Assembly: GCF_000143415.4 (NCBI RefSeq)
Contig: NW_003314266.1
Span: 2,684,414 to 2,748,413 of the forward strand
Reading direction: 5' to 3'
Length of the DNA: 64,000 bases
Source: Selaginella moellendorffii
Lineage: Eukaryota > Plantae > Lycopodiophyta
The notes beneath the pieces were generated by a model, which saw nothing but the letters and a program-made list of their open reading frames with translations, was not told the DNA's origin and ran no database searches. Below, one piece after another: positions 12,831 through 50,097 of the stretch. Position 1 is the stretch's first letter. Every line of letters begins with the position of its first letter. Made by a program: the position numbers and the translations under genes.

Positions 12831-13367
12831 ACGTGGCAGCCTTGTTCTTTAGTTTCGATTGGTTTTTGGATGGGATTTGCTACTCACAGGAGCACGCACT
12901 GATGTGGAAGCTGTGGCTGCTCTCTACAAAGAAAGGATTGAACGTAGTGGCGATGGAGTCCCTTGCATGCGCGAAGAAGAACTAGCTTAACTGGAGGTAT
13001 TTCGATCTTTGTATATGTTATCCAACTATTTTCCATAACAAACGATTTCCTGCCCATCTATTTCGAAATGTGGTAAGTTCCAGAAAATGAAAGAATATTC
13101 TTTATATTAGCTCCCGCACGAGAAAACTCCGTCACCTTGAAAGTACATTGTCCTTAGATACGCGTAAGGTTTTTTGGTCAGATCTTTTGTACCTGCCACG
13201 GCCACTTGAGATCCTTCTCGTGCCCGGGATTATAACTAGTGTATTAATGTCTTAATCGATTAATAAATTCATTAAGGCTAATTTGAGAAAATTAATTGAA
13301 ATAGAATACCTTTTTATTCTTATGACACGTTCACATACATGATCTATTTATTTTATGAAGTCATGTG

Positions 13368-15119
13368 ATGAATGAAGTGGTCGCTTTGAACAAAAAAATT
13401 CAACTCTATGGAAGCATTGGAAATGTGGATTCTGCTCGTGCAGTGTTTGATTCCATAGTGTCCAAAGATGCATTTTCCTGGGTGTGCTTGATATGCTCAT
13501 ATGCCCAAAACGGGTATCTACGACATGCAAAATGGGCCTTCGACAAAATGCCATCACCCAATCTCGTCTCTTACACCGCAATGCTCAGTGCATACGCGAG
13601 AAACGGTCAAATCGATCAGGCCCAAAGTATTTTTGATGCAATGCCACAGCACAATATTGTAGCTTGGGACGCAATCGTATCAGCATTGGCCCAGAGCGGG
13701 CATTTTGAAGAGGCGCGGGAGACCGCAGAAAAAATGCCCGAGCACGGGGCTTTCACTTGGACATCACTGCTCAACTCCTGTGCCCGCGAGGGCGACCTCG
13801 CGGGAGCGCGAGAAATCTTTGCGGTGATGCTCGAGCACCATCTCATCTCCTGGAATGCGATGCTCACTGCGTGCTCGAGGGCCGGGGAGTGTGAGCAGGC
13901 GGAGTGTGTCTTTGATTCCATGCCGGAGCGAGACCTTGTATCCTGGAATGCGATGATCACAACATACTGCCACTGCGATTCCTTTGCACTCGCCATGAAA
14001 GTTTTTCGCGAGATGCCCGCGTGTAACATAATATCCTGGAGCACAATACTTGCCGGAAGTGCTGGAAGTGGACACTTGGAGGAAACAAAAAAAATCTTTG
14101 AGTGCATGCCCATGCACAACCTCGTTTCATGTACCACGATGCTTGCGGCATATTCCCAAGCCGGGCATCTTTCTCTTGCGAGAAAGTTATTCGACTCTAT
14201 TGCCCACAAAGACGTGGTTGTGTGGACGGCTATGATGGCAGCGTACGCTGACAACGGCCATCTTGACCAGGCAAAACGTTTATTCGACGAGATTCCCCGT
14301 ACAAATATCGTGACTTGGAATATTCTTCTTGCAGCATATGCCGGTGATGGGCAAATTGAAGTGTTGAAATGTTTGTTTGACAAGACGCCATGCCAAGGAA
14401 TATTCTCTTGGAACTCTCTTTTGTACGGTTATGCTCGTTCCGGGTATCTATCTGACGTAGAGCAAACGTTTCGTTGGATGCCGGGTTGGAACTTAATGTC
14501 CTGGAATATTTTGCTAACGGCATATGCCCAGACTGGGCATCTTTTGGAATGCGAGGCTTTGTTCCAGGGAATGAATATTCGCGACTCAGTCTCTTGGAAC
14601 GCTCTTCTTGGCGCTCAAGCCCAAGCCGGGCAATTGCAACAGTGCAAGAGAACTTTTCTCTCGATGCCCGAGAGAAGCTTGGTGTCTTGGAACACAATGC
14701 TCACTGCCACCGTCCACAAAGGAGATCTCTCTCACGCCTTCCAAGCCTTTCATTCCGCCAAGCTCTTGGAGCTCCCGGACGACATAAGCTTCGCCTTGAT
14801 CCTGGTAGCATGCAGTAGAACTGGGAAGCTTTTCGATGGAAGGTCTCTGTTTCTGTCGATGGTGGTGGATTTCGGATTGGAGCCGACGATGCAGCACTAC
14901 TGCTGCATGGTTGATCTGCTGGGACGCGCTGGCTTCGTCGAGGATGCGCAGGAGCTCATCGCCACAATGCCGTGCCTTCCAAACGCCGCGGTGTGGGGAT
15001 GCCTGCTTGGGGCTTGCCGGAGTCAGCAGAGCTCGAAAGTCGGCGCTCGAGCGGCGAAGTTTGTCCAGCAGGACGCTGCGTTTCTGCTGCTTGCCAACAT
15101 TTACTCGCTTGACAAGTAG
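13368..15119 (+). CDS. PLS-class pentatricopeptide repeat protein with an E domain, no DYW, intronless
   Basis: Many ~31-aa repeats (F..MPERDLVSWNAMI..Y), then HYCCMVDLLGRAG, VWGCLLGACR and a truncated E domain ending LLLANIYSLDK*. Confidence 0.93.
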   Translation: MNEVVALNKKIQLYGSIGNVDSARAVFDSIVSKDAFSWVCLICSYAQNGYLRHAKWAFDKMPSPNLVSYTAMLSAYARNGQIDQAQSIFDAMPQHNIVAWDAIVSALAQSGHFEEARETAEKMPEHGAFTWTSLLNSCAREGDLAGAREIFAVMLEHHLISWNAMLTACSRAGECEQAECVFDSMPERDLVSWNAMITTYCHCDSFALAMKVFREMPACNIISWSTILAGSAGSGHLEETKKIFECMPMHNLVSCTTMLAAYSQAGHLSLARKLFDSIAHKDVVVWTAMMAAYADNGHLDQAKRLFDEIPRTNIVTWNILLAAYAGDGQIEVLKCLFDKTPCQGIFSWNSLLYGYARSGYLSDVEQTFRWMPGWNLMSWNILLTAYAQTGHLLECEALFQGMNIRDSVSWNALLGAQAQAGQLQQCKRTFLSMPERSLVSWNTMLTATVHKGDLSHAFQAFHSAKLLELPDDISFALILVACSRTGKLFDGRSLFLSMVVDFGLEPTMQHYCCMVDLLGRAGFVEDAQELIATMPCLPNAAVWGCLLGACRSQQSSKVGARAAKFVQQDAAFLLLANIYSLDK

Positions 15120-15134
15120 ATGATAATCACGTAA

Positions 15135-15315
15135 CAAGGAGAAGGAGAAGTTTAATCGAGACAACTGACCTCGAGGGATACTGGAGGAGATCTCCGTTGT
15201 AGCGTTCTGATTATGCAAACATCAACAAAGGCGAAGGAGAAGTTTAATCGAGCGAACTGACCTCGAGCGAGTTGCGTTTCTACTGGAGGACGTAAATGAG
15301 ATCTCCGCTGTGAAG
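15135..15315. repeat. Imperfect direct duplication (~70-90 bp) covering the 3' end of the K+ channel gene
   Basis: AAGGAGAAGTTTAATCGAG..ACTGACCTCGAG..ACTGGAGGA..GATCTCCG occurs at ~15142-15197 and ~15235-15308. Confidence 0.75.
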
Positions 15316-18300
15316 CAGTGTGTCATAGGCCGGGTTCGTGCTCACATAAGCGACTGGAGAGTTGTGCGTCCCAACCGGGCGGTAGAGTCCCAGAGCGAGC
15401 GCCTTTTCGTTGTGCAAGAGCCCCTGGAACAGCTGCTGGAAGCTGAGGCCGACGTAGCAGCTTGGGATCGGAATTTGCTCGAGCCTCCGTATGGAGTTTT
15501 CGTCACCGTCTTCGTCCTCTCCGGTGTGTCGCCCGCAAGAGAGCTGCTCGATGATTGAGACGGAGTTCCTGTTGAAAAACGTGGCGTACCTGAGGATCCA
15601 TGAAGACTCAGAAAGTATTCTCGAGAAAAGGAGGACTTACGTTAGGAATGTGAATGCTGCCGGGCAAAGTCCCTTGCCTTCGGCGAATGGTGGTGCAAAC
15701 TGTAACCTCGCGTCACGGTCTCTTTGCAACGTTTTCGGCTGGAATTGCACGGTGTGGATCCGGGAGTGTGGTCGGAGGAATTGCAGCTGGATCTCTTGTT
15801 GGAGTTCAACCAGCACACGGTTTCTGGCCGGGCTTAGAAGGCGCTCGACGTTCGCAGTTATGACGATGTTCTTCACGTCCAGAGTGTTCACTGTAGGCGA
15901 CACAGCTCCTGCTGCGTCGTCAACTGGTTGGAAGTCGTCCTCGAAGCCTTGCGTGAGGATTACCACCTTCTCTGCTAGCTTAAAACGAGTTAAATCGAAT
16001 ACCTTTAGCACAGACGAAATCTTACCCGCTTGCAAAACTCCAGCACGAACCAAGTCTAGCTCGTACAAAGCCGAGCCTTTCACAAAGTAGACGTCCTCGA
16101 ACAATCCCACGCATCCCCAGTCCGCGGCAGTCGGTGTGCTTGGGTGCATGATCACAAGTGGCATCTGCGGCATCGTTGGAATCCGTAAGTTGCAGACGAA
16201 GTAGAAGAGATTTAGCGGCCAGTTTCCTTCGATGCAGAGTAGAATGTGAGGAAAGGATAAAACCACTACGTTCATCGTCTTCTCCCGCAGGTTTTCCAGT
16301 ATCGTGTCTTCCCTTCTTTCCAAAACCGGTCGCTCGGGCTTATCCCACTTCCTCAAAGGTGGCCAACTCATTGCCATATCTATGGCTTCCTCCAGCGAAG
16401 CAACAAACTTTACTTTTGAGTGGCCTTCTTCTTCAACCGAATCGATAGACGAGTAGAAGGGACGAAAATGGCCTTGAAAATCCGTTCTTGTACCTGGCCT
16501 GGTGGAATCCTTTTTGTCGTCATACAAATGGTCGTCAGTTGTCGTCCTCTTGGTCCGTCGCCTCTTATCCCTGCTTTTAAAACCAGTTTCCACGTCCTGC
16601 CGGCTTCCCTTCACGCTTCTAAGAATCCCGTGGTCTTCTTCATGCTTAAATTTACCAGATGATCTTCGGCGTGCTTTACCGTATTCTGAAATGCGTTCCG
16701 CCATCTCTAAGTCCTTCGCAATGACCAAACCAAGATCGGATGGCTTAATTCTACGGCCCCGTGGATAGAGTCGCACTACACGGAGCTTATTTTCAAGTAT
16801 AATGTCAAGGCCAATAAGAACCGCATGGTACTTGAGGTACACAATTTCAGCCGCCTGAAGGAAAAGATCACTGTGTGTGAAGTTCAAAGTTATCTGTACA
16901 AACCTCTTCAAAAGTCAGTTTCTCTTCGAAAAAGCAAGTCGGTAATATAGCTGGAAAGATCTCCTGCCGAACACCATAGCAGTACTCTGTCATCCAGTGG
17001 TCAGCGTGTGAATGTCTCAGCAATAACCCGGAACGAAAAAGGTTGATTACAAGAGTTGAAAACCCCTGAATAAGACAGCTGAAACGAAAACAAGAGTCAT
17101 GCTTTGAGGTAAAGCTCAGACTGTACCTTCGAGCTAAAAGTTGAAAGCGGACTGCCTCAGGGCAAATGATTTCAATACCAGCCTCAGTTTCATCCCAAAT
17201 AGCATTATTGTAGTTTTCAGGTTTTAGCAGCTCCACGATCACTCTCACCTTCGAACCACAATGACGATGAACGGAAAGAGTCCGGGTTATTTGAGCCGCG
17301 TCTTCCGCATCAAAATCCTGAGAGTGGTTTCATGGTCAGTGCCAAGAATTGTAGTGATTGCCTGCACCTTCGCATGCTCATCCGCAAGTAAGAATACCGC
17401 TGTTGCAAAAGTAGCACAAACACGATCTAAATCGGACTCTTTTATAGGAGTTCCTTCAATGAAGTTGACTCGTCCTCGGTAATGCGTCAGAAGTGTCTTC
17501 ATCTCATACCTGCAAAGCTCGATAATTAGAAATATAATATTCACCAGCGCACATACGAAGGTTTGAAAGGTGCCATGATAACAACTCGAATAGGAAACGC
17601 TGCCATGTCTATTCGCAAACAAAAAATAAAATGAGAACATCACTGCATCACCTTACTTACCTTTATCATGGTTAGGATGATAGAATCCAGCTAGGAAGTG
17701 CCGAATTGTTTGAAGGGATACATTTCCGCTGATGACGATAAAGTTAGACCCAACCGCCTTTTGCATCGTAAATCTTCCTCCATAAGGTCTGCATAAAACG
17801 ATGATGAGTGAGTTAATTAACTCGACAACATACCTGCGAGAGGCAAGCTGTAGAATTCTGTTGATTTGCACTGGAAGAATAAGTACAGCAGCAAGCATGA
17901 TAGTGAGAGTAATTAGCCGTCCCCAGTTTGACTTTGGCGTGAAGTCTCCATACCCAACGGTGGTAATCTAGAAAAGAAACTCAAGTGAAAAACAATGAAC
18001 TAAACTTCTTACCGTCACAATCACAAAATAAAAGGCATCATAAAAGGTAAAACATCCCGAGACACCACAACCTTGCTGTATTTTCTTATCCGCCGATGTA
18101 GTTTTATATTCCACCCACTGAAGTATGCCAGCGGCAATAAAAACTGCATGCAAATAAAGAAGAGATTTTGAAAGAACTTAGCTTGAACCTACCAGCACCG
18201 AGTGTGTACATTACGAGAAGAAAAATTTGCTGGCCAATTGTACCACCGACGATCACAAACGAAGTGAGGGAAGGTAGAATCCTGAACAATAGAAAACACA

Positions 18301-19782
18301 TATACTCTACATTACAGATGTTTAAAATAAAAGCATACGCTAACCTCAAGGCTCGAAGGACCAGTAGCATTTGAGGGATAGCACCATCGTTCTTAAATTT
18401 GCTGCAAGCATAATCGAACGAATCAGTTGCAGATGTTCTTCCTTGACAAAACCAACCTCCAGAGGCAAACAATTGACAAGGTGCTGCTGAGGTCGATGAG
18501 GCCACTTACGGATATAACGTAGTACAGTCGGACAGGAGCGCTGCACAAATATGTTAGTAATAATCCATAATCCAGGATTTCTGTAGCATGATACCTATAG
18601 AGCTTTAAGAGATAATCTGCGACGAAGAAAAGACCAAAAACTCGCCTCACGATCACAATCCAATGAGTCGACGAGAGTATATAGCTAATGAAACAGGATA
18701 AAGCTGTCAAGTTTGAAGGATTAACCGACTTACGTCGATCGCACATAAGCAACAACAGATACAACTGCTGCAATGAATTCTATCTGCGTATCAAGGAATT
18801 ATCAGACAATTGCTACAGAATGTTTAGCTTACACAGAGTAGAATATGGCCGAGAGTACCACTGCGAATCGCTGTTCTCACTTTGATTGTCAATGGAACAG
18901 TGCCGTATAGGTACAGATTGTGGTATCTGGCAAGAACATCCTTTCCACAGAGAAAAAGAAACAAACGATTTCACATCCAGAAGACATAGAGAGTGCTTAC
19001 CTCAGTGGCATTAACTTCCTTTTCCTTCGTTTGATCTTTGAGCCAGAGGAGGCTTTGCAGCAGCACATACTTGACAGAGCCTCTAAACTTCCCGAGCGAT
19101 GACTCCTCAGGGACCTTGTTCTCGCGCTCCCTCGGCAAAGAGAATTCCGCATGCTTGGCTTCCAAATCGAACTCCAAGTCATCCTCCAAAACAGGTGTGC
19201 ACTGGCCAGTGGGAGTGATGAGCAGCGTCCGAGAGCGAGTGAGAGACTTTGTTCCGGCATTCATTCCACTGCTAGCCAGAGCTGGAACAGTAACCTCCAC
19301 CATGTTGGACCTCTCAAGAAATCCCATGTTCTCGTTGTCCATATCACTCCTGGAAAAAAATTAGCAAAAGGAGAAATCAGTTCTAAAGTTTCCAAACAAA
19401 TCCCAAGCAGCTTAATCAATCACCGGCCATATCGCAAGACAGTGTCGGAGAATGCTTTTCGCATTTTTCTGTGTTGCAGCTCACAAGAATTATCCCTCTG
19501 ACACGAGCGCAAGCAAAAACAATGTCTCTGCTAACTCCCAGTATGTCAAAGCCAAAAGGCTTTAAAGTCTCCAAGGAAAGAACTTACTGGCGAGGATTCC
19601 TTCGTACGCTGGTCCAGGGTGCCATCCTTGTCCAACGCTGTGACGCCAGGAAACATACCTTTCATATGGTTCACTGAAAAAAATAGAGAGCTATGGCTTA
19701 GCTAGAGGCCAAAGCTTATAGAACAAACAGACCTTTGCCGGTGCCAATGCTGCGACGCGACAAATCCTCTCACATCTTCCAT
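15280..19782 (-). CDS. BK/Slo-family large-conductance K+ channel with two RCK domains, multi-exon (start uncertain: 19782 or 19342)
   Basis: S4-like LLVLRALR; pore FYDAFYFVIVT|ITTVGYGDFTP; RCK motifs FIEGTPIKESDLDRV and YFVKGSALYELDLVRAG; VLVELQQE, PPFAEG; C-terminus LGLYRP..YVSTNP..GDLIYVLQ* (TAG at 15280-15282). Confidence 0.9.
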
Positions 19783-20166
19783 GACGATGACCGATTCGAT
19801 TAGCCGATGTGATTCACGAGGAACGATCCATCACAGTTAGCTCACCTTCCTAAACCCTGGACTAGGGCTCTTGCTGCGCGCGATTCAAATCGCTCACCGG
19901 CGCGCGAATCAATCCGGGGCGTGGCGCTGGAAGATCGTGGAGCTGGAGCGGGAACGATCGATCGAGGGGCGCGCGCGATCCAATCGACCGTCGCGACAGT
20001 CAATAATATCGCCAAGGCGCAGCATCATCATTCGCTTCGTGTGAACAATGGAATGGAAGAGCTATGAAATCGAATATTCGCGAATTATTATATAACTGAC
20101 CGTTTATTAGCAGCATTTAAAGCTCTGCCACGATCGTTACTCTATAGATCGCATTCTTTGATTCGA

Positions 20167-21315
20167 TCACGCCGATCCAGCTACAATACCACCGATTCTA
20201 CCAGCGTCGAAAATTTCAATCCAGTAACCATCTGGATCCTTGATGAACGCTAGACCCTTCATTGATCCTGTCAAGAAAAAGAGATTTCCATGAATACCAG
20301 CGAACGCGATTCTAGTTTTTTCACGTACCATCGTCCGGTTTCTTCACAAACTCCACGCCAAGTTTCTCGAATCTCTCGCAAGCCCTGTAGGTGTCGTCCA
20401 CAGAGATTCCAATGTGCCCTTCACAGGTTTTCCCTTTTCAGAGAAAGAAGAAAAGTGAAAGAGAGATTCGGGGTCTACCATAGCCGCGAGGATCAGCATT
20501 TCCATTGTGGTAGCCTTTAAAGTCTGGATCCGTCTCAGTCCCCCAGTTGCTACAAAGCCCAACACATAAGATTAGAAGAAAACACTCTCTCCAACATCAC
20601 GTACTGTGTCAGTTCTATGGTTGCTTTCTTCCTGAAAGTCCAGCGAACACGCTCGATCGGGTCTTTTGGAGCCTCGGCCGAATCCTGCATCAAAGAAAGA
20701 AAAAGAAACTTTCATTGTGCTAAGTCCAACACTTCGAGGACCTCGTATCCTACGAAGTATAGCGAGAACTTCGAATCCGGGAAGTCTAGCCTTTTCAAAA
20801 GCCTGAGATTCGAAAGTTTTTGTCAGTACAAACTATCCAGATCAAAGTACTTACGTCATTCCAAGGACGCGCGAGTAGAAATCCAAGCTCGCTTTTGGAT
20901 CCTTGATCCGATACATCTATAAAGATGAACGATATAAAGGATGGAAGCTTTTAGACAAGAAAGAGAATGTAGCAATGGACAAAAGTGAAAAAACGTGGCA
21001 CTCACAGTTTGCTGCACGATATAGCCTTTGGTTGCCTCATCCGGTGATTCACTCAAGCCGGGATTATTCTCCGCCGATTCCTTAGATGCCGTGGTAGCCA
21101 TCGCTCGATTCCTTAGCTGCATTCTCACAGATCAGCATGCTCCGTGACCGGAAATCCCAATCGACGCACAACCTATCGGTGAGAACCTTAAGATTACGCG
21201 ATGCGCAGCCGAATTGCCCCAATCCACGCGGTAGATGCCTGGCGCGCAAGGATTCCAGCAAGGAGCAACTAGAAGCGAAGGAAATCTTTGAGAATGCAGT
21301 GGCCGATCCAGCCAT
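20167..21315 (-). CDS. GLX1: Lactoylglutathione lyase (glyoxalase I, eukaryotic Zn-type) with a transit peptide, multi-exon
   Basis: QQT|[55 protein letters not shown] and [15 protein letters not shown]; Ser-rich N-terminal extension. Confidence 0.95.
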
Positions 21316-31908: not shown

Positions 31909-32779
31909 TGTATGACAAAGCATTTGATGTTCCCGGAACCCTCTGATTGCTGGACAAAGATTTCTTCATTGAGATCTCCATGCAAGAACATTGTTCCATT
32001 ATTACACAAACTTCTGGATTTCAATTCTTACATAAAAAATAAATTATTCAAAGTTAATTCTTGAGCATAGTAAAAGTTTTCCAAATTGCTTTTGTTGTAG
32101 AAGTGGTGCAGACTCAAGTTACAAAGTTATAAATAAATTCTTGTAGTACACTTTAATATTGTAGTATTGGAAATTTGGATCAACCAACATTAAATTGTGT
32201 TATTTATAGATTTGTTTTTCTAGGTGATTAAGCTTGTTCACATTATTATTTGTGAGGAGATTGGAGAAGAGAATACTGTTAAACAAACATCTTGATATAT
32301 TCTTCACCATCTTTTAGCCTAGAATAAAGAAATTAAAGATGTATACTCCATCATTCTTACAGCTCAAACAGTAACTATATGGTGTTTTATGACTAATCTG
32401 GAGAGTTTGTTAATCTTTTTGTACATCAGGATCAACACATATTACATAGTATTTTTCCACACCTAAAGCTCTTTTGGGATAGACTCCATGAAATTTTTTA
32501 TAATAAATCAAAATTAGTAAAAAAAACTTATTCGCCTTTCTTAATGTCAATACGATGATAATTTTACTATTGTAATTTGTTATTCCCAAAAAATATATGT
32601 TTTATCTAAATCATTTTGCAAGATATAGTAAGCATATTTTGAGAACACTTTAATGAGCTGTATTATTTTCTTGAGCAAATTTTATATTCACATGCTTAAT
32701 AAACAATATAAAACTCACAAGTTCACAAAGGTGGCATGATTTTTTCCCCTCTCCTCCAAGGCTATAGTTGAAAAGCTGA

Positions 32780-33050
32780 GCTTTCTTGGTGGAAGTGGGC
32801 CATTTCCATGGGATCCCAAGGGAGATAGTCTTTGACAAAGACCCTCCTTAGCTTGTTCTGGACATCATTGTGGAAGCTACTTAGGACAAAGTTTAGTTTT
32901 TTGCATACCTACCACCCACAGAGTGACAGGCAAACTCAATGAACAAACCAAATGCTTGAGGTGAGCTTTCTGTGTGGACAAGCTGATATCATGCCTAGTT
33001 TGTTTACATTATGATTGAATCCTCTGCAATCAGCATGACACTGTACATCT
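32780..33050 (+). mobile_element. Degenerate Ty3/gypsy integrase fragment
   Basis: With frameshifts and stops it reads HGIPREIVFDKDP, FWTSLWKLL.TK and YHPQSD.QT..TNQMLE. Confidence 0.7.
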
Positions 33051-33267
33051 ATATGGCTGCAGAGTCTAGGAACAATTCCTTTTCCTACAGGATGTAGCAG
33101 TCTCTTAGTCAGAGGTCAAGGGCCACCTGGAAGAAACATAACCTGGCCAGTGAATGAAGTTCTACACTGATCAAAAGTGCTAGTTTTGCACATTCAGTGT
33201 CAATGAGTGGGTGTATGTATAGTATTGATTTGAGCACCACACATTAGGACAAATAGCTATGGTGAGA

Positions 33268-33848
33268 TGTAGCACATATAATATTTGAATATATGGATTT
33301 TTGGAACTTTAGGGAATAAATAGGGATAAAATAATTTTTAAAGGATCTTTTATTAAACAATTGTATTTTTTTAAATTGGTTTTAAAGGAAGTGTGTTTTA
33401 TATGATATCAGGGTAGTTAAATTTTAAGTAGCCACTTATCAAGTGGGAATCTTACCCCTAAAATTGAAATCATATATGACTACATACTTTGTCTTATAAG
33501 GTATCCACAAATAAAGGTATTTAACATAAGACTGTAGTACAAGTGGATAACTAGTTACTTTACATATAATAATTTATTTATAATGGGAGGATTGATAGAT
33601 TTAGTGTGAAAGTGGAAGTTTTAATTCATCTTAACTTAATAGGGTTTTTAGTCAATAATCAATGAAGATAATGACATATGTAAAGGGGATGTAAATGTAG
33701 TATGTATGATCATGGGATGAGATTTAAATATACTATTACTATAGATTTTTAAAACCTTAGGGGATAAATAAAAATAAAATAACCATTAATATCAAGCAAT
33801 TGCACCATTTTCAGTTGGTTTAAGGGGAAAGAGATAAAGTACATTATA
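33268..33848 (+). mobile_element. TRIM-like short-LTR element, old copy
   Basis: Two ~140-150 bp repeats starting TGTAG (33268, 33696), a decayed PBS TGATATCAGGGT after the first, and a purine tract AAAGGGGATG before the second. Homologous to 48149-48614. Confidence 0.7.
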
Positions 33849-34534
33849 CAAAATTTAAGCTACATCCAAGATATGTTCAAAAGCATTCATTTGTTACTCG
33901 AGGTGGTTTAACATATAGCTTTAGATTTTCAATGTTGTTCAGTGTAAGTTCCTGAATTTGAGTTTTCAAATATATTATACTACTCAAATCCAAAGATGCT
34001 CAACCTTAAGTATCCACCAAGTACTGTTAAAAAATTTATAAGAGTATCCTCCTAAACCCTTAACTAACTAGAAAAGGGAAAATGAGCCACCTATAACTGC
34101 CATAGCTATCACAACCATCCATGGTAGCTACAACTAGAGATCATTATGTCTTCAAAAAATATAATGAATCATATATAGAGTCAAAAGCAACATAATAGCA
34201 AGTCTAATATTTAAATGTTGGGATGGATGGGAGTTATGAGTTGGAACAAAAGGAAGATATATCAAAACTGCATATATCAATAATAAATTATATAATACAA
34301 ACTCATTATTAAAATCTCGTTTTTATGACTTTGACTTGAGTTAAGCTAAATTTGTGAACTTAACTTAATTTTGGTCTACCCCTTTCTAATACAATTCTAT
34401 ATGAGAGTCCATATTAGATAGCTTCTAAATAAAAGTAAGTAGTTTTAATTGAATCAAATCATTATTAAAAACCACTATTGGCAAGATAGAATCAATATAT
34501 AATGATAGTCTTATTTATTCAATTTTTTATAAAA

Positions 34535-35440
34535 TCAATTTGGTTTAGCCCATATAGATTTTTTTTCTACATTATCATAAAGAATTATATGACCACTATT
34601 GCTTACACATAGTGCCATTACCTTCCATATGTTTTTCCAATATATACTATTTGTCCATATAACAATACTTTTATTGTCATATATTACAAGGTTACCATCA
34701 GTTTGCAATCTCAACAAACAACCTTCTCCCTTATTATTTGTTTCAGTTTTCCAAATGGTAATTGGACCTTTAAACAAGATAAGTACACAATTTAATTGCA
34801 TATATAATATATATTCTCCATTTGGTGAGATGAGAAAGTTTCCAGCATATAAGTTAGAAAATGATGAAAAATCATCTATGCTTCTAATACAAACATCCTT
34901 CCATGTACAATCAGTTTTAACTATATTTTTTGATATATAAGGATTATAGTGAGAAGTTTGAGTAGTGGGTATAAATTTTAAAGAACTATTTTGAGCTGTA
35001 TTATAGTTATCATTTTTAAAATTATATAAAATACTAAATGATTCAACAATATATTCAGATATTCCAAAATTTAATATACCATAATCATTTTCTATATGAG
35101 AAGTGTATATAGATTCAAATTTCTTCTTTAACATAGAACCATAATAAGGAGCTGCATATTCAGGAAATATACTACAAAGTAATTTGTAATACCGAGGAAC
35201 ATTCTCTATAGCTAAAGGGGTTAATACTATTTTTATTTCATTATGAACATAAATAATAGAACTTCCAGGCATATATGGAGTTAAATCATTAATTGACTCT
35301 ATTGCAGCTCTTATAGCTCTTAAAATTATATGCTTAGTTGGATCAAAAATTCGATGAGCATTATCCCGTATAATTTCTATTCCAAAAAGTTTTGGAAGAA
35401 AGAAAACCAAAATAAAAAATATAAAGAACTTTTGAAACAT
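34535..35440 (-). CDS. Secreted protein with a C-terminal bulb-type (GNA/B) lectin domain, intronless, very AT-rich
   Basis: Signal peptide MFQKFFIFFILVFFLPKLFG; lectin region LYAGNFLISPNGEYILYMQ..IWKT..CLLRLQTDGNLVIYD..IWTN, including one QxDxNxVxY site. Confidence 0.7.
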   Translation of the reverse strand: MFQKFFIFFILVFFLPKLFGIEIIRDNAHRIFDPTKHIILRAIRAAIESINDLTPYMPGSSIIYVHNEIKIVLTPLAIENVPRYYKLLCSIFPEYAAPYYGSMLKKKFESIYTSHIENDYGILNFGISEYIVESFSILYNFKNDNYNTAQNSSLKFIPTTQTSHYNPYISKNIVKTDCTWKDVCIRSIDDFSSFSNLYAGNFLISPNGEYILYMQLNCVLILFKGPITIWKTETNNKGEGCLLRLQTDGNLVIYDNKSIVIWTNSIYWKNIWKVMALCVSNSGHIILYDNVEKKSIWAKPN

Positions 35441-35942
35441 ATTAAAAATGTTGAAAGATATTCTACCTGTGAAGTCTAATCAAATAAATTTATTGTAATA
35501 GTTACATCATTTCATAGAACTAAAACTCTTTTTTTTCTATTATATATGTGTGATGTGGGTTTACTGATAAGTGTTACATTATCACAGTTAATCTAGAAAA
35601 TTATGTCGTTTATATATAACATGTGAAATCATACTTCTCAATTGTGGCAAACCAATATTTTTAGTAGATAATATGTGTCTTCATGTTGCCATAATGCTCA
35701 CTATAATCAGCTTCATTTATGTAACTTTTAAATTGTGGTCCCAATTCTCTAACACCTAATTTGCCATAATAATATCACCAAATTTGTTATTCTTTGTCAC
35801 TTGCATCCACTTGGCCTCCATGTAGTATATAGCACAACAGCATACCTATCACCTAAAGCTAGCTCTTTCACCAATGAACATAAAGTTTTTAGCTCTATCA
35901 CACAAGTTAAGAGTGGTTATTTTATAATTTTATTCTTGTATG

Positions 35943-36267
35943 ATTATGTTTGAGAGCATTAATATTATATTATTTAATACATTACCTCTACATATTTTTA
36001 TTGAAAGAGGGAAATTTACATTAAGTTAATTTATTTTTAATGTTTACTTCTTAAATATTAAATATTATTAAAAAATTAGATAGGATTGACACTAGTAACA
36101 ATAGTATCTAAATTTTTATATACAATATTATATTTATATTTATAGAATATATATCTAAGATGTAAAAATTAAAAAATAAATTAACTTAATGTAAATTTTC
36201 CTCTTTCAAGAGAAATATGCAGAGGTAATGTATTAAATAATATAATATTAATGCTCTCAAACATAAT
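35943..36267. repeat. Fold-back inverted repeat (arms ~105-115 bp), MITE-like
   Basis: ATTATGTTTGAGAGCATTAATATTATATTATTTAATACATTACCTCT... pairs with ...AGAGGTAATGTATTAAATAATATAATATTAATGCTCTCAAACATAAT. Confidence 0.85.
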
Positions 36268-38499
36268 GAAAATCAATGTCAAAGGAATATAGTTAATTTT
36301 AACAAAAAATGGTTAGTGGATAGTATCTCTAGTGAATGTTGCATACTTGATTGGGGGAGGATAAAAAACACTTACTAGCTCCATAAGAAACAAAATATTA
36401 CAACAATCATCTAAGTTGGGTGGCACTATAAATCAAAGGCATAATCTAAACAAATACATTATTATAAAAGCTTAAAATTTTATGTGTCAACTGAGTCATA
36501 GCATTTATCTAGCTGCATACTAAATAAGAATTCGATCAAAACCTCTTGTCCTTTGGTAAGTACTTCTGATGTCAACTTTGTGAGTATGAGTCTAGTATCT
36601 GTGTCTCATCCACTTTGATATATCCCATGTTCTCTTAAAATTTCTGATAAATATTATTTAGTATTAATTTTCTTACTTGTGACTAATATAAAATATGGTT
36701 AAATTTCTAGAATTTATAAATAACAAACCAATAAAAAGGCTTGATCTCTCTTGGCTCAAATTAAGCTAGATGTTGGAAATTTAGATTTCATGTTAGAAGC
36801 CCTAACAGGCAAGTGTTAAATCCCTTAGTAATCACAGTCTTTCACTCACTTGCCCCTCATTGCAATCCTTTTCTTTTTGCAAGCAAGATGATTTAGCACA
36901 ATTATCACTTAGGATATTGTGCACTAATCATAGCTATCTGGGGCTAGCACATGTGAGGTTATTAAAATTTGGAAGACAAAGGATAGGCAATAATTTTTGA
37001 AAAAACATTTAGAGTAATACAAAAAACTTTAATGCATCACCTCCAAAATGAGCAACTATTTGATGGTTTTCTATTTCTTTCTAGATTCTAGTTCAAGAAA
37101 ATAGTAAACACAGTCTTGGAAACTTAGAGAAGCATTAAGAAACAAAGTTGAGAACTCTTGGTCTTCCTTGTATTATGAAATTCAATTGTGTGATTCTCGC
37201 AAGTGATGACAATATTATATTTTCAAATTGTGAGAAGTCCTTGGCAAGAAGACCTTTGACCTTTCATCCTTAGTATAGATTTTTAAATGAGGATGGGTTT
37301 ATATCCTTCGTATTATATTTTTAAATGAGGGATGGGTTTATAAGGATCTTCATGTCCTTTTCCATATATTATATCCAATTATTTATAGATTTATAATTTT
37401 AAAACTTTTATAGCTATTCATCATTATATTATAAACTCTTAAAAGGTAAATTCTCTTTTAAAAGTTTAATACATTTTGGAGACTTCCTTCTCAAGGACCT
37501 AGGGCCTTTAACTCCTGATCTTGTGTGTCTTTTCAATATAGGAAGATGCTTGTATAGAAAAGTCATCACTATAAGTTAATCTCACTAATATCTATAAGAA
37601 TCCAAACTTATAATAAACTATTTTATTTATTTATCTGTCTGGTCTTTATCCAAAAAGAAACTTTTTTGCTATACTAGAAAAATCCCTGAACTCCAGCTGA
37701 CATATCTAAACATTCTCTTTATACTATAATTAAACTGTGACTTCTTTTATATTGAAATAGATGGAAATCAATGATAATGCTTTTCAACCATCACAAGAAA
37801 AAAGTAAATATTCTTTCCCCTTGTGGTGACTTTGGAGTGGTACTATAATGTTGAGAGCTTTGAAGAGTCACTTTCATGGGAAGGGTTTAAGATGGCAGAG
37901 TTCATCTTAACCTTGGTTGGCGAGCTTCTATTCAACAAACTTTGCTCGTTGTGCCATTTCAATCCTTGCAAGCATTTAATGAGGAGTGGCTGCTTACAAT
38001 TTGAGGTCTCAAAAGATATTTTAAACTAGAGATATACATTTCTGCAGACCAACCATGGAATAAGATCTTTCTATCATGGTTAGGCAAGTGATGCATCATG
38101 CTCTAAGTGCATATATTAAGTTTCAAAACCTTGAGTGAAGGTTGTCAAGCAAGGGGGATTGCCAGAACTTTTGCTTATCTCTCCCACCCTTAAAACCGGT
38201 GATAGAAGCAACACTAAGCACAAGGGCTAAACTAAAACCAATTCAACACTCTCCATCACCTTTTGCTCCATGAGATGTAATGCAGCATTTGGACAGCATC
38301 AAGAATGATAAATGCTTTGATTGTAGTGGTTGATTGTTCAAGGGACACCATTTTAGAAGGAGCTCTCTTCAGTGAGGCACTCTTTAAGGAGAGTGCCTCA
38401 ACTATTTCTTGGATTGCCTTCTCTGCTAACTAGGCACTTTGCATGAGTGACTGGGGATTGTCACTGCAACAAACTCAGCCTAGCATGACACTTCACCAA

Positions 38500-39212
38500 G
38501 AGCTAGATCTTCCTTCAAGCTATTACCAGATATGATGGTGCACGAAGATTCTTTCAAGATGGTTTTTGCACACACCAAGGACTTTACCAATTTAAAGTAA
38601 TGTTGTTTGGACTAATAAATGCCTTAGATACTCATAAACAAGATTTTCAGACCATATTTTTCCATTTCATTCTTGTCTTCTTCAAGGACATTCTGATGTA
38701 CAGTTAGACAGAGGAACACTTGGAGCACTTGGACATAGCATTATTGTCTACATTCTTGCTAGAGGTCAAATTGGTGAAATGCTTCTTTGGGTTGGCAGAG
38801 GTAGAGTATGTTGGATTTCGACTTTATCCATGCAAATCCTAAGAAATTGGCAGCCATTGTTAATTGGCCCCATCCATAAATGATGAAGCAGTTGCAGTCC
38901 ATTCTAGAGCTTTACAACTATCTTAGGAAATTCATTGAGCATTATGCCTCAATCACAGCCCTGCTCATGGACATCCTATGCTCACCTACATTCTACTGGG
39001 ACAACAAAGTGGTTGATTCTTTCTAAGAGTTGAAGGCACACATCAAATCAACACCAATTTTGAAGCTCCTAGGCTTTTTGAGGCCATTTGTGGTCGAAAT
39101 AAACACTTCAAATCCAAGAGTAAGGGCCAAAAGCTGAAGCCACTGACTTGTGTATGAATAGAAAATGCTTGGCATCATGCATGCTATAAGGAAATGGAGG
39201 CACTACTTGAAA
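38500..39212 (+). mobile_element. Degenerate Ty3/gypsy RT-RNaseH relic
   Basis: Remnants LDL.S.Y.QI, HQGLYQFKVM.FGL.NA, RKFIEHYASITA.L, RPFVVE and MLGIMHAIRKWRHYL, with many stops and frameshifts. Confidence 0.8.
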
Positions 39213-40107
39213 CTAGCTTTGGTAGGTGGTTGTCCTATGGCCAATGGCCCCAGAGAAGAGGGAGTTGCACCAAGCACTATAAGCCTAGTGGAACCCTAAA
39301 TAAATGAATATAAAAGTCTTTAGGAGTGTTTCTATTTATAAATATTTTATAATTATGCTAATAAAGGGTTAAATAATAATATTTAAAATTACTTATACAC
39401 TAAAACGAAATATATTTATAAACAATATATTGTGATATTAAATATATTTTAAATATATATTTTACATTATGATATTACATATATATTTTTACAGAAATTT
39501 TCTTCTTAGATATTTTCTCAAAGTTTTAGAAAAATGCAGAGGCAATTTATAAATTATTATAATTGCCATTGCCTTACCAAATAGCATTGCAAAATACTTA
39601 TTTGATGCTTGTGTTCTATGTATGAACTCATGAACATGAAAATCAAGAATACAACTGAAGAATAACAATAGAACAAGTTCTTTTGACTCTAGATTTATTA
39701 ATTCTTTAGAATAAAATTCAATAATAGCATGGATTAAACCATGATCCATTGAAAATCACTTAGAAGAGTGAAATAGTGTTATTCTTATTTATTAATTCAA
39801 TTGATCAAATGAAAGTTTATAGTTATAAATATGTCTCTAATTTATAAACACAAGATTAATATTATTGCATATCACCCATTAGAATAAGTTAGAATGAACT
39901 ATAAAATTTTAGAAATTTTTTATAAATTATAAATATATTTATAAATTATATATAAAATATTAATCTAAATTAATAGATAGCTAAAATATATAAGTATATT
40001 CTAAATATATTCACTACTATCTAAATAAATGTCTAATTCGTATAATGACAAATAATTGAGCCCCTTACCTTAGAGCTAACTTTAAAAATCTTTGCCTTTG
40101 TGCAGAA

Positions 40108-47153: not shown

Positions 47154-48063
47154 TGTAGCGCACCTGAATTTGGAGCCGAACTCCAAGCCCGTTGCGCTAC
47201 GAAACGAGGGTCTGGTACAATCCCACGAGCACCAGCTCCCCGTATCCAGCACCTGCACGCAAAAATGGTGTCAGAAGGAGTCTAGCACAATTTTGGCATA
47301 CCGGTGGCCTAACGCGAGAAGGAGGGTACTCCACCAACTAGAGCAGCGTGGAGCTTGGGCTTAGACCCAAGCCGGACGCAGAACAAGGAGCGACACAGCC
47401 CAGCGGGAGCCAAACTAATGTCTTAGGTGGTCGGACATGCATTCCAACCACTATCCCTACTATACATTTGGAACCCCCCACAGCCCCCCCCCCTTGAGGG
47501 ACACACGCTTTGGGCTTTCACCCCAAGCCTCCCTTAGTACCAGGAGTGGACAGGTCCAAAACTTACTAAATAGGGAATGTCCTTAGATTGCGAATTTGGA
47601 CACGGGACGAACACCATGGTGTTCAGGCCAATCTCTACATTCCGTAGATATACCAAATGAGCTAATCTAGACACTTTCCATAAATAGCATTTAGGACCGA
47701 AATGAGACCAACACAAAGGGCGTGATAGCGAGGGTTTTTGGCAGACACGGTAAGCTATCATCCGGTGATATTGAGGGACTAGTCTCAATACGCGAGGGTT
47801 CTTGCCAAGCCAGTGCAAGACAAAGCAAAGAGAACTAACAAGCCGGGCCAAGTATGCTTGGCTAAATAGACACTTAGGAATTCCTTCCTTATGCTCATCC
47901 GGCCAAGTACAGATGCTAAGTCCAGTTTATTAACACTTGGACAAGAGGGGCCAATAAAGGGAACCAGCAGTACCGACCTCCTGCCGTCATGGCAGTAAGG
48001 AAAGAGTGCCCGTAAGGACTGGTCGACAAGTATCTTTCGATACCCGAAGTCACATTCGCGACA
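47154..48063 (-). repeat. 5' LTR of the chromovirus
   Basis: Adjacent to a tRNA-iMet-type PBS and matches 40719-41638. Confidence 0.95.
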
Positions 48064-48112
48064 AACACTAAGCTAGGTAACTTCCCAAGAAGTCCAAATT
48101 TAAGAGCTTACA

Positions 48113-48740
48113 ATGGCATTGTTATCATTCTAGAGGAGCATAAATTGTTGTAGCGCATGTGATTATGGGATGAGATTTGGATATACTATCACTGTGAATC
48201 CTTGGAACCTTGGGGGATAAATGGGGATAAAATAGCCACTAAAGGCTCTCTCATCAAGCAATTGCCCCTTTTTCAGTTAGCTTAAGGGGAAAGAAATAGG
48301 GTGCGCAACATTTGGTATCAGAGTAAATGGCACAGGTTCGATTCCCATTGATTAGTGGCTACTTAAAAAATATAATATAATATACCCCAATATGGGGTTT
48401 TCTCTCATCAATATAATATACCCTTGAGTAAAGTATATTTTTACCCCTAAATTTGAAATCATATGTATTAGGCATCATTGTCATCATAGGATGAGATTTG
48501 GATATACTGTCACCATGGATCCTTAGAACCATGGGGAATAAATAGGATTCTCTCTCATCAAGCAATTGCCCTTTTCGCAGTTGGTTTAAGGGGAGAGAGA
48601 TAGAATGCGCTACAATTGCCCATTAATAGTTATGGTTTTGAAAATATACATATAATGTGGAAAAACATGTTATATGCATTATTTGGACCCTCTACTATGT
48701 CACATGTAAATTTACCTTCTCCTTTTTTTACAAAAACTCC
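48113..48740 (+). pseudogene. 3' continuation of the transportin duplicate (copy of ~30937-31103), interrupted by the TRIM
   Basis: ATGGCATTGTTATCA matches source ATGGCGCTGTCATCA; TATGCATTATTTGGACCCTCTACTATGTCAC matches source TATGCATTACTTGGACCCTCTGCTATGTCAC. Confidence 0.85.
48149..48614 (+). mobile_element. TRIM-like short-LTR non-autonomous retroelement
   Basis: LTR 48149-48310 (TGTAGCGC...GCGCAACA) is followed by PBS TTTGGTATCAGAGT. The second LTR (~48483-48614) ends GCGCTACA. TSD ATTGT/ATTGC; no coding capacity. Confidence 0.85.
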
Positions 48741-50097
48741 AAATGTTTTTGGTGTTTTAATGCACTAGATTAAACTTGCCATTGTACCCTAACACTAATC
48801 CTTGTACCAAAGTTAAAGCAAACTATGATATTCTAATCACTTTAGTTATAGTTTTTCATTCTATTCTCCATATCCCCCACTTTAACTTTGGAGTTACTAG
48901 ATACACAATGCACTAGCTATATTCTAGTTCACAGCTCCTTCATCTCCCCCTCAATGCAAAGTCTATTAACTCTAGGACTTATGACTTTACAATGCTAGAA
49001 TGGAGTATAATGGTATGGACATTCATTTATGTACTTTCTTGCACAAAAAACTTAATATATCTATCATTTATTGTTCCTTAAATTTCAATGTAATAAAATC
49101 ATAATTACCAAGTAAGTAGTTTCTCTATGGTTATCTTATGGTGGGTAAAGGGTGAAAACCATATGCATTACATTATTGCTTTAGATATAGAACAAATGGA
49201 TCTGGATATAGAATAAATATAGTACCAATTAGCATAAGTGTAATTTATATATGATCTCAATTAACAATACTCTTCAAAGTAATGCTTCCAATTTCTTTTT
49301 AGTTTTGGATTTTATAAGTGCCTAAACTGATTGAAACACCTATATCTACTCAGAACCAAGCCCTTGGAAACATATGCCAAAAATAACAAAGTAAAACTCA
49401 AATTTCAAAGCATTAAACCACTCAATGAAGGAATGAAACCACAAAACTCCTAAACAAACTAAAAGGTGGCTCTGTTTTATATGTTAGTTCTAACATTGGG
49501 ATGTTAATATTCTAGGATTGTTCTAATGTTGCTCCATGCTCTTGCTTTTTTAAACATAATGTACACAAGACTAACAAACTCTCCAAACTCAAGATAGCAT
49601 ACTCTGGTTCCACACTTGAAACTCTATTGGAAGAAATCCAAACTTCCATTATTTTATTGGTAAGCTTGGTTTTCTTTCATACTTCACTTCCATATGTCAA
49701 TACAATGACAGCTTCACTGTGATAATATTGTCATTCCAGTTAAATGTAGATCACTATACAAAGCATAGTAAGTATTTGTTGCTAGCAAAACATATTTTTA
49801 GATCACTTTGCAGAACAAAGTATTTGTTGAGATTACTTTGTGTTACAACTTCTTTCATATGAAATTTACAAGACTTTATTTAGCTGATCTTCATGTCTGA
49901 TTCTTGATTAACAAGTAATTGAACACTATTTCTATAGTGTATTTCTCCTCATCTTTATATTCGAGTTTGAGAAATTAAAAAAAAAGTAGAATATTATAAA
50001 CCAAGTCATTTTGGGTTTAAATGTATATATAAATAAACTTTGCTCCAAAAATATTTAGTAACCAGAAAACAATAAAGATCTAATTCATGGCTGTCTT

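Follow-up and report, generated by a model that had tools for sequence, protein, structure and literature searches.

BK-like channels have been listed for Selaginella (Sel-moe-BK1/2) and Physcomitrella (Phy-pat-BK1/2), with none in flowering plants (Gomez-Porras et al. 2012, PMC3410407), and S. moellendorffii has been reported to be without Shaker-like inward-rectifier (Kin) channels (PMC3410407). We analysed a 64,000-nucleotide (nt) stretch of S. moellendorffii DNA (the window) that carries a candidate gene of this kind on its minus strand. The locus is an intact S. moellendorffii gene that encodes the pore-forming subunit of a channel of the 'plant BK' kind, the green-lineage branch of the Slo family. 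The gene is already annotated in RefSeq (XP_024525215.1, isoforms X1-X4). The segment of its product that aligns with the Ca2+ bowl of animal Slo1 has lost the bowl ligands and carries a positive net charge.

A later preprint (Sussmilch et al. 2021, bioRxiv 10.1101/2021.06.01.446568) describes a plant BK clade that spans algae to gymnosperms and whose members have an extended linker, unconserved bowl and RCK1 residues, and no S6 glutamates; the S6 glutamate ring is tied there to the very large conductance of Slo1. It also reports that MpBK2a of Marchantia polymorpha has its highest expression in male tissue and is a K+-selective outward rectifier with a conductance of 40-80 pS. MpBK2a was insensitive to Ca2+, Mg2+, and Na+, with no response to 100 µM Ca2+ or 2 mM Mg2+. 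It was voltage-gated, its gating was shifted by both external and internal pH, and cytosolic acidification promoted its activity (10.1101/2021.06.01.446568).

Among the animal channels, the bowl region of mSlo3 has only two negative charges (PMC2229511). Slo2 is described as having a bowl of swapped charge, termed the 'chloride bowl' (PMC2229511, which cites Yuan et al. 2000; PMC2151493), and the chloride-bowl motif is FMFRLPFA (PMC2151493).

Gene model and relatives

In the six-frame translation of positions 15000-20000, the gene first appeared as successive short open stretches of the minus strand. Splice sites were placed by mapping the allele of the other haplotype, P0140, onto the window, and the resulting exons are listed in Table 1. 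All of the 19 exons, each translated in its own phase, were exact substrings of the database protein P0170, which is XP_024525215.1 (1133 amino acids (aa), isoform X2). The whole product is thus represented here by P0170, checked exon by exon, rather than by an assembled spliced protein. The four isoforms modelled in RefSeq, X1-X4 (1143, 1133, 1096, and 1095 aa), differ only in the first exons or the start codon (19424-19665, minus strand), and the conserved channel part begins at MDNENMGF, near 19342. Isoform X1 is recorded at GL377570.1:2689693-2714078 of GCA_000143415.2. An earlier note on this DNA had drawn the gene at 15280-19782, an extent that covers the coding part, 19665..15280, and includes extra 5' sequence. 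P0140, which lies on another scaffold, represents the second haplotype; it is ~99% identical to the product of the window gene, with about a dozen of 1136 residues differing, and it is also intact.

The introns are very short (45-90 nt) and several of them leave the frame open, so that plain lists of open reading frames (ORFs) fuse exons and add false residues. The intron at 16025..15972 is such a case: the 18 intron-derived 'residues', GKISSVLKVFDLTRFKLA, that it contributes to a 424-aa ORF are absent from P0140, P0170, and P0001, the last of which is the product of the Selaginella paralogue SmKC1. A second candidate in-frame intron, of 51 nt within the basic segment (GTGCAA...TTACAG), was rejected, since the paralogues, the second haplotype, and the relatives from other plants all have this segment, aligned and conserved.

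Pfam searches of the exon pieces detected Ion_trans_2, Slo-like_RCK twice, BK_channel_a, and Slowpoke_C, and a single stretch of a hidden Markov model match covered S1 through the C-terminus of Drosophila Slo. The assignment to a Slo/BK-type channel in the earlier note is supported by Pfam and by the profile alignment described below, and its intact TVGYGD pore (minus strand, 17961..17944) and two RCK domains were borne out. The novelty that it implied was not: published accounts of the plant BK clade already include the missing bowl, the extended linker, and the lack of such channels in angiosperms, and RefSeq annotates the gene. Both the gene and this type of channel were known before, so the observation is accurate but unremarkable.

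When P0001 was used in a word-index search, the named proteins retrieved came from Selaginella moellendorffii, a clubmoss, mosses, liverworts, ferns, and gymnosperms; no angiosperm protein was returned by this search. With the longest piece as query, exhaustive HMMER searching yielded 139 relatives, the best full-length one being P0001 at 64% identity. In a quick maximum-likelihood tree of 37 rows, from a set that included no Marchantia sequence, the plant BK clade was separated from non-plant Slo-like sequences with a Shimodaira-Hasegawa-like approximate likelihood ratio test (SH-aLRT) value of 99. The gene was placed within the land-plant BK clade as (Diphasiastrum,(SmKC2,(this gene,SmKC1))). 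Three BK loci were found in S. moellendorffii: the window gene, SmKC1, and SmKC2. P0140 was 68% identical to P0001 (SmKC1) and 56% identical to P0141 (SmKC2), and SmKC2 lies on the same 4.1-Mb scaffold, GL377570.1, as the window gene. Since no Shaker-like Kin channels are reported in S. moellendorffii, the three BK paralogues may carry more of the K+ physiology in this species than in other plants.

The bowl-equivalent segment and other ligand sites

The register of the bowl was taken from a profile of 20 plant BKs that was aligned to Drosophila and human Slo1; the two alignments agreed and contained no gaps. Because the alignment opposite the bowl-equivalent segment, QFQPKTLQRDRDARLQFAPPFAEG, is gap-free, the loop has the same length as that of Slo1. 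None of the Slo1 ligands survives in it, as D892 is replaced by P, D895 by L, and D897 by R. The net charge of its first 14 residues is +2 versus -8 in Slo1, and the flanks are kept (QF...PPFAEG). In the model of the gating ring, the predicted local distance difference test (pLDDT) score of this segment was 92-96 (model residues 585-608). The earlier note had claimed that the bowl is replaced by a basic segment and had quoted QFLRPHSRIHTVQFQPKTLQRDRDAR before PPFAEG; this string is present at 15783..15706, as are the two acidic strings that it quoted, FEDDFQPVDD and GEDEDGDE. The positive charge and the loss of the ligands were confirmed. The register was wrong, because its anchor on QFL, 12 residues upstream, would require an insert of 12 residues, which the protein does not have. 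By the present alignment, the bowl is re-charged, not lengthened.

Among 42 plant-clade sequences, the D895 column was occupied by Y in 30 and the D897 column by R in 35 (by a basic residue in 40), while the two columns after D897 held N in 32 and R in 26, and most of these relatives have Y-x-R-N-R at the bowl position. No acidic run was present at the bowl position in any of the 42 sequences, where the net charge ranged from -2 to +4 with a median of +1.

The two acidic patches were judged by sequence position, conservation, and model confidence. Both lie in loops that are variable in length and sequence, unconserved among plant BKs, and different even between the three Selaginella paralogues, and the suggestion that they provide a substitute site was not upheld. 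In RCK1, the profile alignment to human Slo1 revealed the replacements D367 to N, E374 to R, and E399 to N, whereas E535 is kept. The E399 position retains E in most other plant BKs, and the D367 position is variable among them (N, S, C, T, Y, or R). As judged by these replacements, the predicted RCK1 Ca2+ site is damaged (D367 to N) and the predicted Mg2+ site (E374 to R, E399 to N) is gone.

The near-invariant Arg takes the place of Slo1 D897, a residue that holds Ca2+, and the loop around it has the Slo1 length and a high model confidence. It is conceivable, though rather unlikely, that the plant 'bowl' is a re-purposed element and no dead remnant, in which this Arg would mimic the bound cation and keep RCK2 in an activated-like state, or that the loop would act as an internal proton or anion sensor. 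If this were true, the tethered positive charge would explain why MpBK2a activates in a voltage range for which Slo1 needs Ca2+. The conserved Y-x-R-N-R motif, whose first Arg aligns with D897, offers a concrete mutagenesis target for how these channels work without Ca2+.

Membrane core, gating ring, and surroundings of the gene

Kyte-Doolittle hydropathy in 19-residue windows reached the threshold of at least 1.5 only in S1-S6, which were assigned to aa 196-218 (S1), 228-248 (S2), 257-277 (S3), 286-305 (S4), 311-338 (S5), and 383-410 (S6). Within the voltage-sensor domain (S1-S4), S4 reads LRALRIL and has two Arg residues, one at the position of Slo1 R213 and the other three residues further on; R207 is replaced by Q and R210 by L. 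At the inner end of S6, the Slo1 glutamates are replaced within PVQINRILQLASRRPYGG (E321 by R and E324 by Q).

No S0 helix was detected upstream of S1, as the Kyte-Doolittle maximum in residues 1-190 was 0.72. An S0 candidate was missing in 18 of the 20 plant BKs, in which the score before the pre-S1 motif was below 1.1. By hydropathy, the N-terminus of ~190 residues is predicted to be cytosolic and without S0. The lack of a hydrophobic S0 favours six helices and an N-terminus in the cytosol over the arrangement of seven helices on which the literature has speculated. The otherwise variable N-terminus contains one strongly conserved stretch, the pre-S1 motif EDVLxxYHxxxLYGxVPLTIKVRTAIRSG (18857-19003, minus strand, aa 167-195), several residues of which are invariant across plant BKs. 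This motif may form an interfacial helix in place of S0.

When the profile of the 20 plant BKs was compared with solved structures, Slo1 was matched at 8e-91 to 1e-84, Slo2.2 at 8e-57, and the Slo3 gating ring at 1e-46; the bit scores were ~290-309 for Slo1 and 190-196 for Slo2. The long exon alone gave no match to solved structures with phmmer, and the 20-sequence profile was required. An AlphaFold model of the gating ring (aa 412-1133, 97 aligned relatives) had a mean pLDDT of 87.6 and a predicted template modelling (pTM) score of 0.89. A full-length model with 20 sequences was set aside, its mean pLDDT being 54 and falling below 50 over the bowl. Foldseek matched the gating-ring model to Slo1 gating rings and full channels at E-values of 1e-39 to 1e-30, with TM-scores normalised by target of 0.76-0.80 on Slo1 and Slo3 gating rings (0.80 for the Slo3 ring). 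The RCK1-RCK2 linker is long and highly charged, as the earlier note had stated (92 aa, 42% charged), and it is predicted to be disordered, with pLDDT below 50 at model residues 336-372.

Table 1. Positions in the window of the channel gene and of the features of its product.
Feature	Position	Strand	Details and evidence
Coding part	15280..19665	-	19 exons, 18 GT-AG introns of 45-90 nt, 3402 nt (1133 codons + TAG)
Exons 1-7, high to low	19665-19588, 19497-19424, 19349-19001, 18940-18833, 18783-18734, 18684-18595, 18540-18457	-	
Exons 8-14, high to low	18401-18345, 18281-18193, 18143-18013, 17967-17834, 17788-17661, 17608-17557, 17509-17368	-	
Exons 15-19, high to low	17317-17127, 17078-16904, 16854-16026, 15971-15641, 15589-15280	-	
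In-frame 54-nt intron (GTAAGA...TAGCAG)	15972..16025	-	Inside long 424-aa ORF 16911..15637
Transmembrane core S1-S6, introns between pieces	17848..18856	-	Hydropathy and alignment to solved Slo1 S1-S6
K+ selectivity filter TVGYGD (aa 373-378)	17944..17961	-	P-loop between S5 and S6; Ion_trans_2 1.4e-09 on exon
RCK1 (aa ~425-698)	16693..17760	-	Pfam Slo-like_RCK and BK_channel_a; AlphaFold pLDDT mostly >90
RCK1-RCK2 linker, 92 aa (aa 699-790)	16417..16692	-	22 K+R, 17 D+E; 42% charged, net +5
RCK2 (aa 791-1133), two introns inside	15283..16416	-	Slo-like_RCK 7.3e-12, Slowpoke_C 7.7e-06
Acidic patch 1, FEDDFQPVDD (aa 930-939)	15916..15945	-	Variable loop; pLDDT 58-63 at model residues 521-540
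Ca2+-bowl-equivalent segment (aa 996-1019)	15676..15747	-	Gap-free alignment to human Slo1 Q889-G912
Acidic patch 2, GEDEDGDE (aa 1054-1061)	15499..15522	-	Variable loop; pLDDT 68 at model residues 641-650

The channel gene has close neighbours on both sides. An intronless 584-aa ORF of PPR-like repeats (13365-15119, plus strand), publicly recorded as a 583-aa gene, converges on it, with the two stop codons ~160 bp apart. A glyoxalase-domain gene (234 aa, Pfam Glyoxalase; ~20167-21315, minus strand) ends ~500 bp upstream of the start codon of the channel gene. Elsewhere in the window, blocks of very low G+C content (27-33%) were found at 32001-40000 and 48001-50000, while the rest has 45-55%.

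Gating and comparison with known Slo channels

By comparison with MpBK2a, the present data are consistent with a channel whose gating is independent of the Ca2+ bowl. The earlier note had also proposed gating by something other than the bowl; this agrees with MpBK2a, the one plant BK that has been characterised. Modelled on MpBK2a, a channel of four subunits would be a K+-selective outward rectifier that is activated by depolarisation, has a moderate conductance, and is unresponsive to cytosolic Ca2+, Mg2+, and Na+. Changes in external or internal pH would shift its voltage dependence, and its task would be membrane repolarisation. The channel may also act in swimming sperm, as the earlier note had suggested, the basis for this being the expression in Marchantia only.

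Several points weigh against this explanation. MpBK2a comes from a liverwort, and, as the tree set included no Marchantia sequence, it may not be the orthologue of this lycophyte paralogue. The conserved E535, together with Asn at the D367 position, which may give an oxygen ligand, could allow a weak sensitivity to divalent cations. At several positions this paralogue also leaves the plant consensus (L instead of Y, D instead of N, and N at E399), so its gating may differ in detail.

Retained activation by Ca2+ or a different divalent cation, bound at the partly kept RCK1 site or at an acidic loop, is improbable. This explanation is favoured by E535, which is Glu in 16 of the 20 plant BKs including the window gene, by the Asn at D367, and by the two acidic runs in RCK2. 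However, plant BKs are not uniform at the D367 position, both acidic runs occupy loops of low model confidence that are not shared even by the three Selaginella paralogues, and MpBK2a was unresponsive to 100 µM Ca2+ or 2 mM Mg2+. Alternatively, the basic bowl might be an opposite-sign ligand site like the 'chloride bowl' of Slo2, through which Cl-, anionic lipids, or nearby phosphorylation would tune the gating ring. The net charge of +2, the R-N-R core conserved in plant BKs, and the charge-swapped chloride bowl described for Slo2 (PMC2229511; PMC2151493) fit such a site. Nevertheless, the pattern F[RK]LPFA, which represents FMFRLPFA, matched 0 of 191 proteins examined, P0170 included, and Slo1, not Slo2, is the nearer relative of the window protein. 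No anion dependence has been reported for MpBK2a, in the study of which Cl- was apparently not varied. We give an anion site little chance.

The locus might also be a decaying or unexpressed duplicate among the three Selaginella BK paralogues, since it stems from a lineage-specific duplication, with SmKC1 as its sister (68% identical, P0140 versus P0001), and is off-consensus at several conserved columns. This is very improbable, because 19 of the 19 exons are open, all 18 introns are GT-AG, and the second haplotype is intact with only about a dozen of 1136 residues differing. Moreover, all family motifs are kept and RefSeq models four isoforms. The new points are minor, namely the absence of a predicted S0 helix and the conserved Arg aligned with D897. 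The gap-free bowl register, the Y-x-R-N-R motif, and the missing hydrophobic S0 are of use to specialists.

Animal Slo1 (KCNMA1; PDB 6V22, 5TJ6, 7PXE) provides the best-scoring solved relatives. The window protein resembles it in S1-S6, the TVGYGD-type filter, the tandem-RCK gating-ring fold, the identical length of the bowl loop, and the QF and PF.G flanks. It differs in the lack of S0, the charge of the bowl (+2 versus -8), a much longer linker, and an S4 that has only the R213-equivalent and one further Arg. The residues that differ are L and R at D895 and D897, N at D367, R at E374, N at E399, R at E321, and Q at E324.

Animal Slo2 (Slack/Slick, KCNT1/2; PDB 5U70, 8HIR) is similar to the window protein in the absence of S0 and in the positively charged bowl region. 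Its overall similarity is lower than that of Slo1, and FMFRLPFA is absent from the window protein. Slo2 is not known to have a charged S4, whereas S4 of the window protein has RxxR. In addition, MpBK2a is not activated by Na+. Animal Slo3 (KCNU1, PDB 4HPF) is a pH-gated channel of sperm that has S0 and is opened by cytosolic alkalinisation. It shares with the window protein the match in gating-ring fold and a bowl region that has just two acidic residues, and by analogy Ca2+-independent gating with pH as the likely control may be a further likeness. In contrast to Slo3, which alkalinisation opens, MpBK2a is promoted by acidification. Any sperm role shared with Slo3 would be convergent.

The closest counterparts are the plant BKs. 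The 2012 list names two Selaginella channels, whereas the window gene is a lycophyte-specific paralogue and one of three loci; it also departs slightly from the bowl consensus, with L for Y and D for N. Both plant BK papers (2012 and 2021) entertained an S0, which was not found in the product of the window gene. MpBK2a has been recorded electrically, whereas the product of the window gene is known here from sequence and model. It belongs to the same clade as MpBK2a, Sel-moe-BK1/2, and Phy-pat-BK1/2, together with liverwort, moss, fern, and gymnosperm BKs, and shares with them the architecture, the extended linker, the lost bowl ligands, the unconserved RCK1 Ca2+/Mg2+ site, and an S6 free of the glutamate ring.

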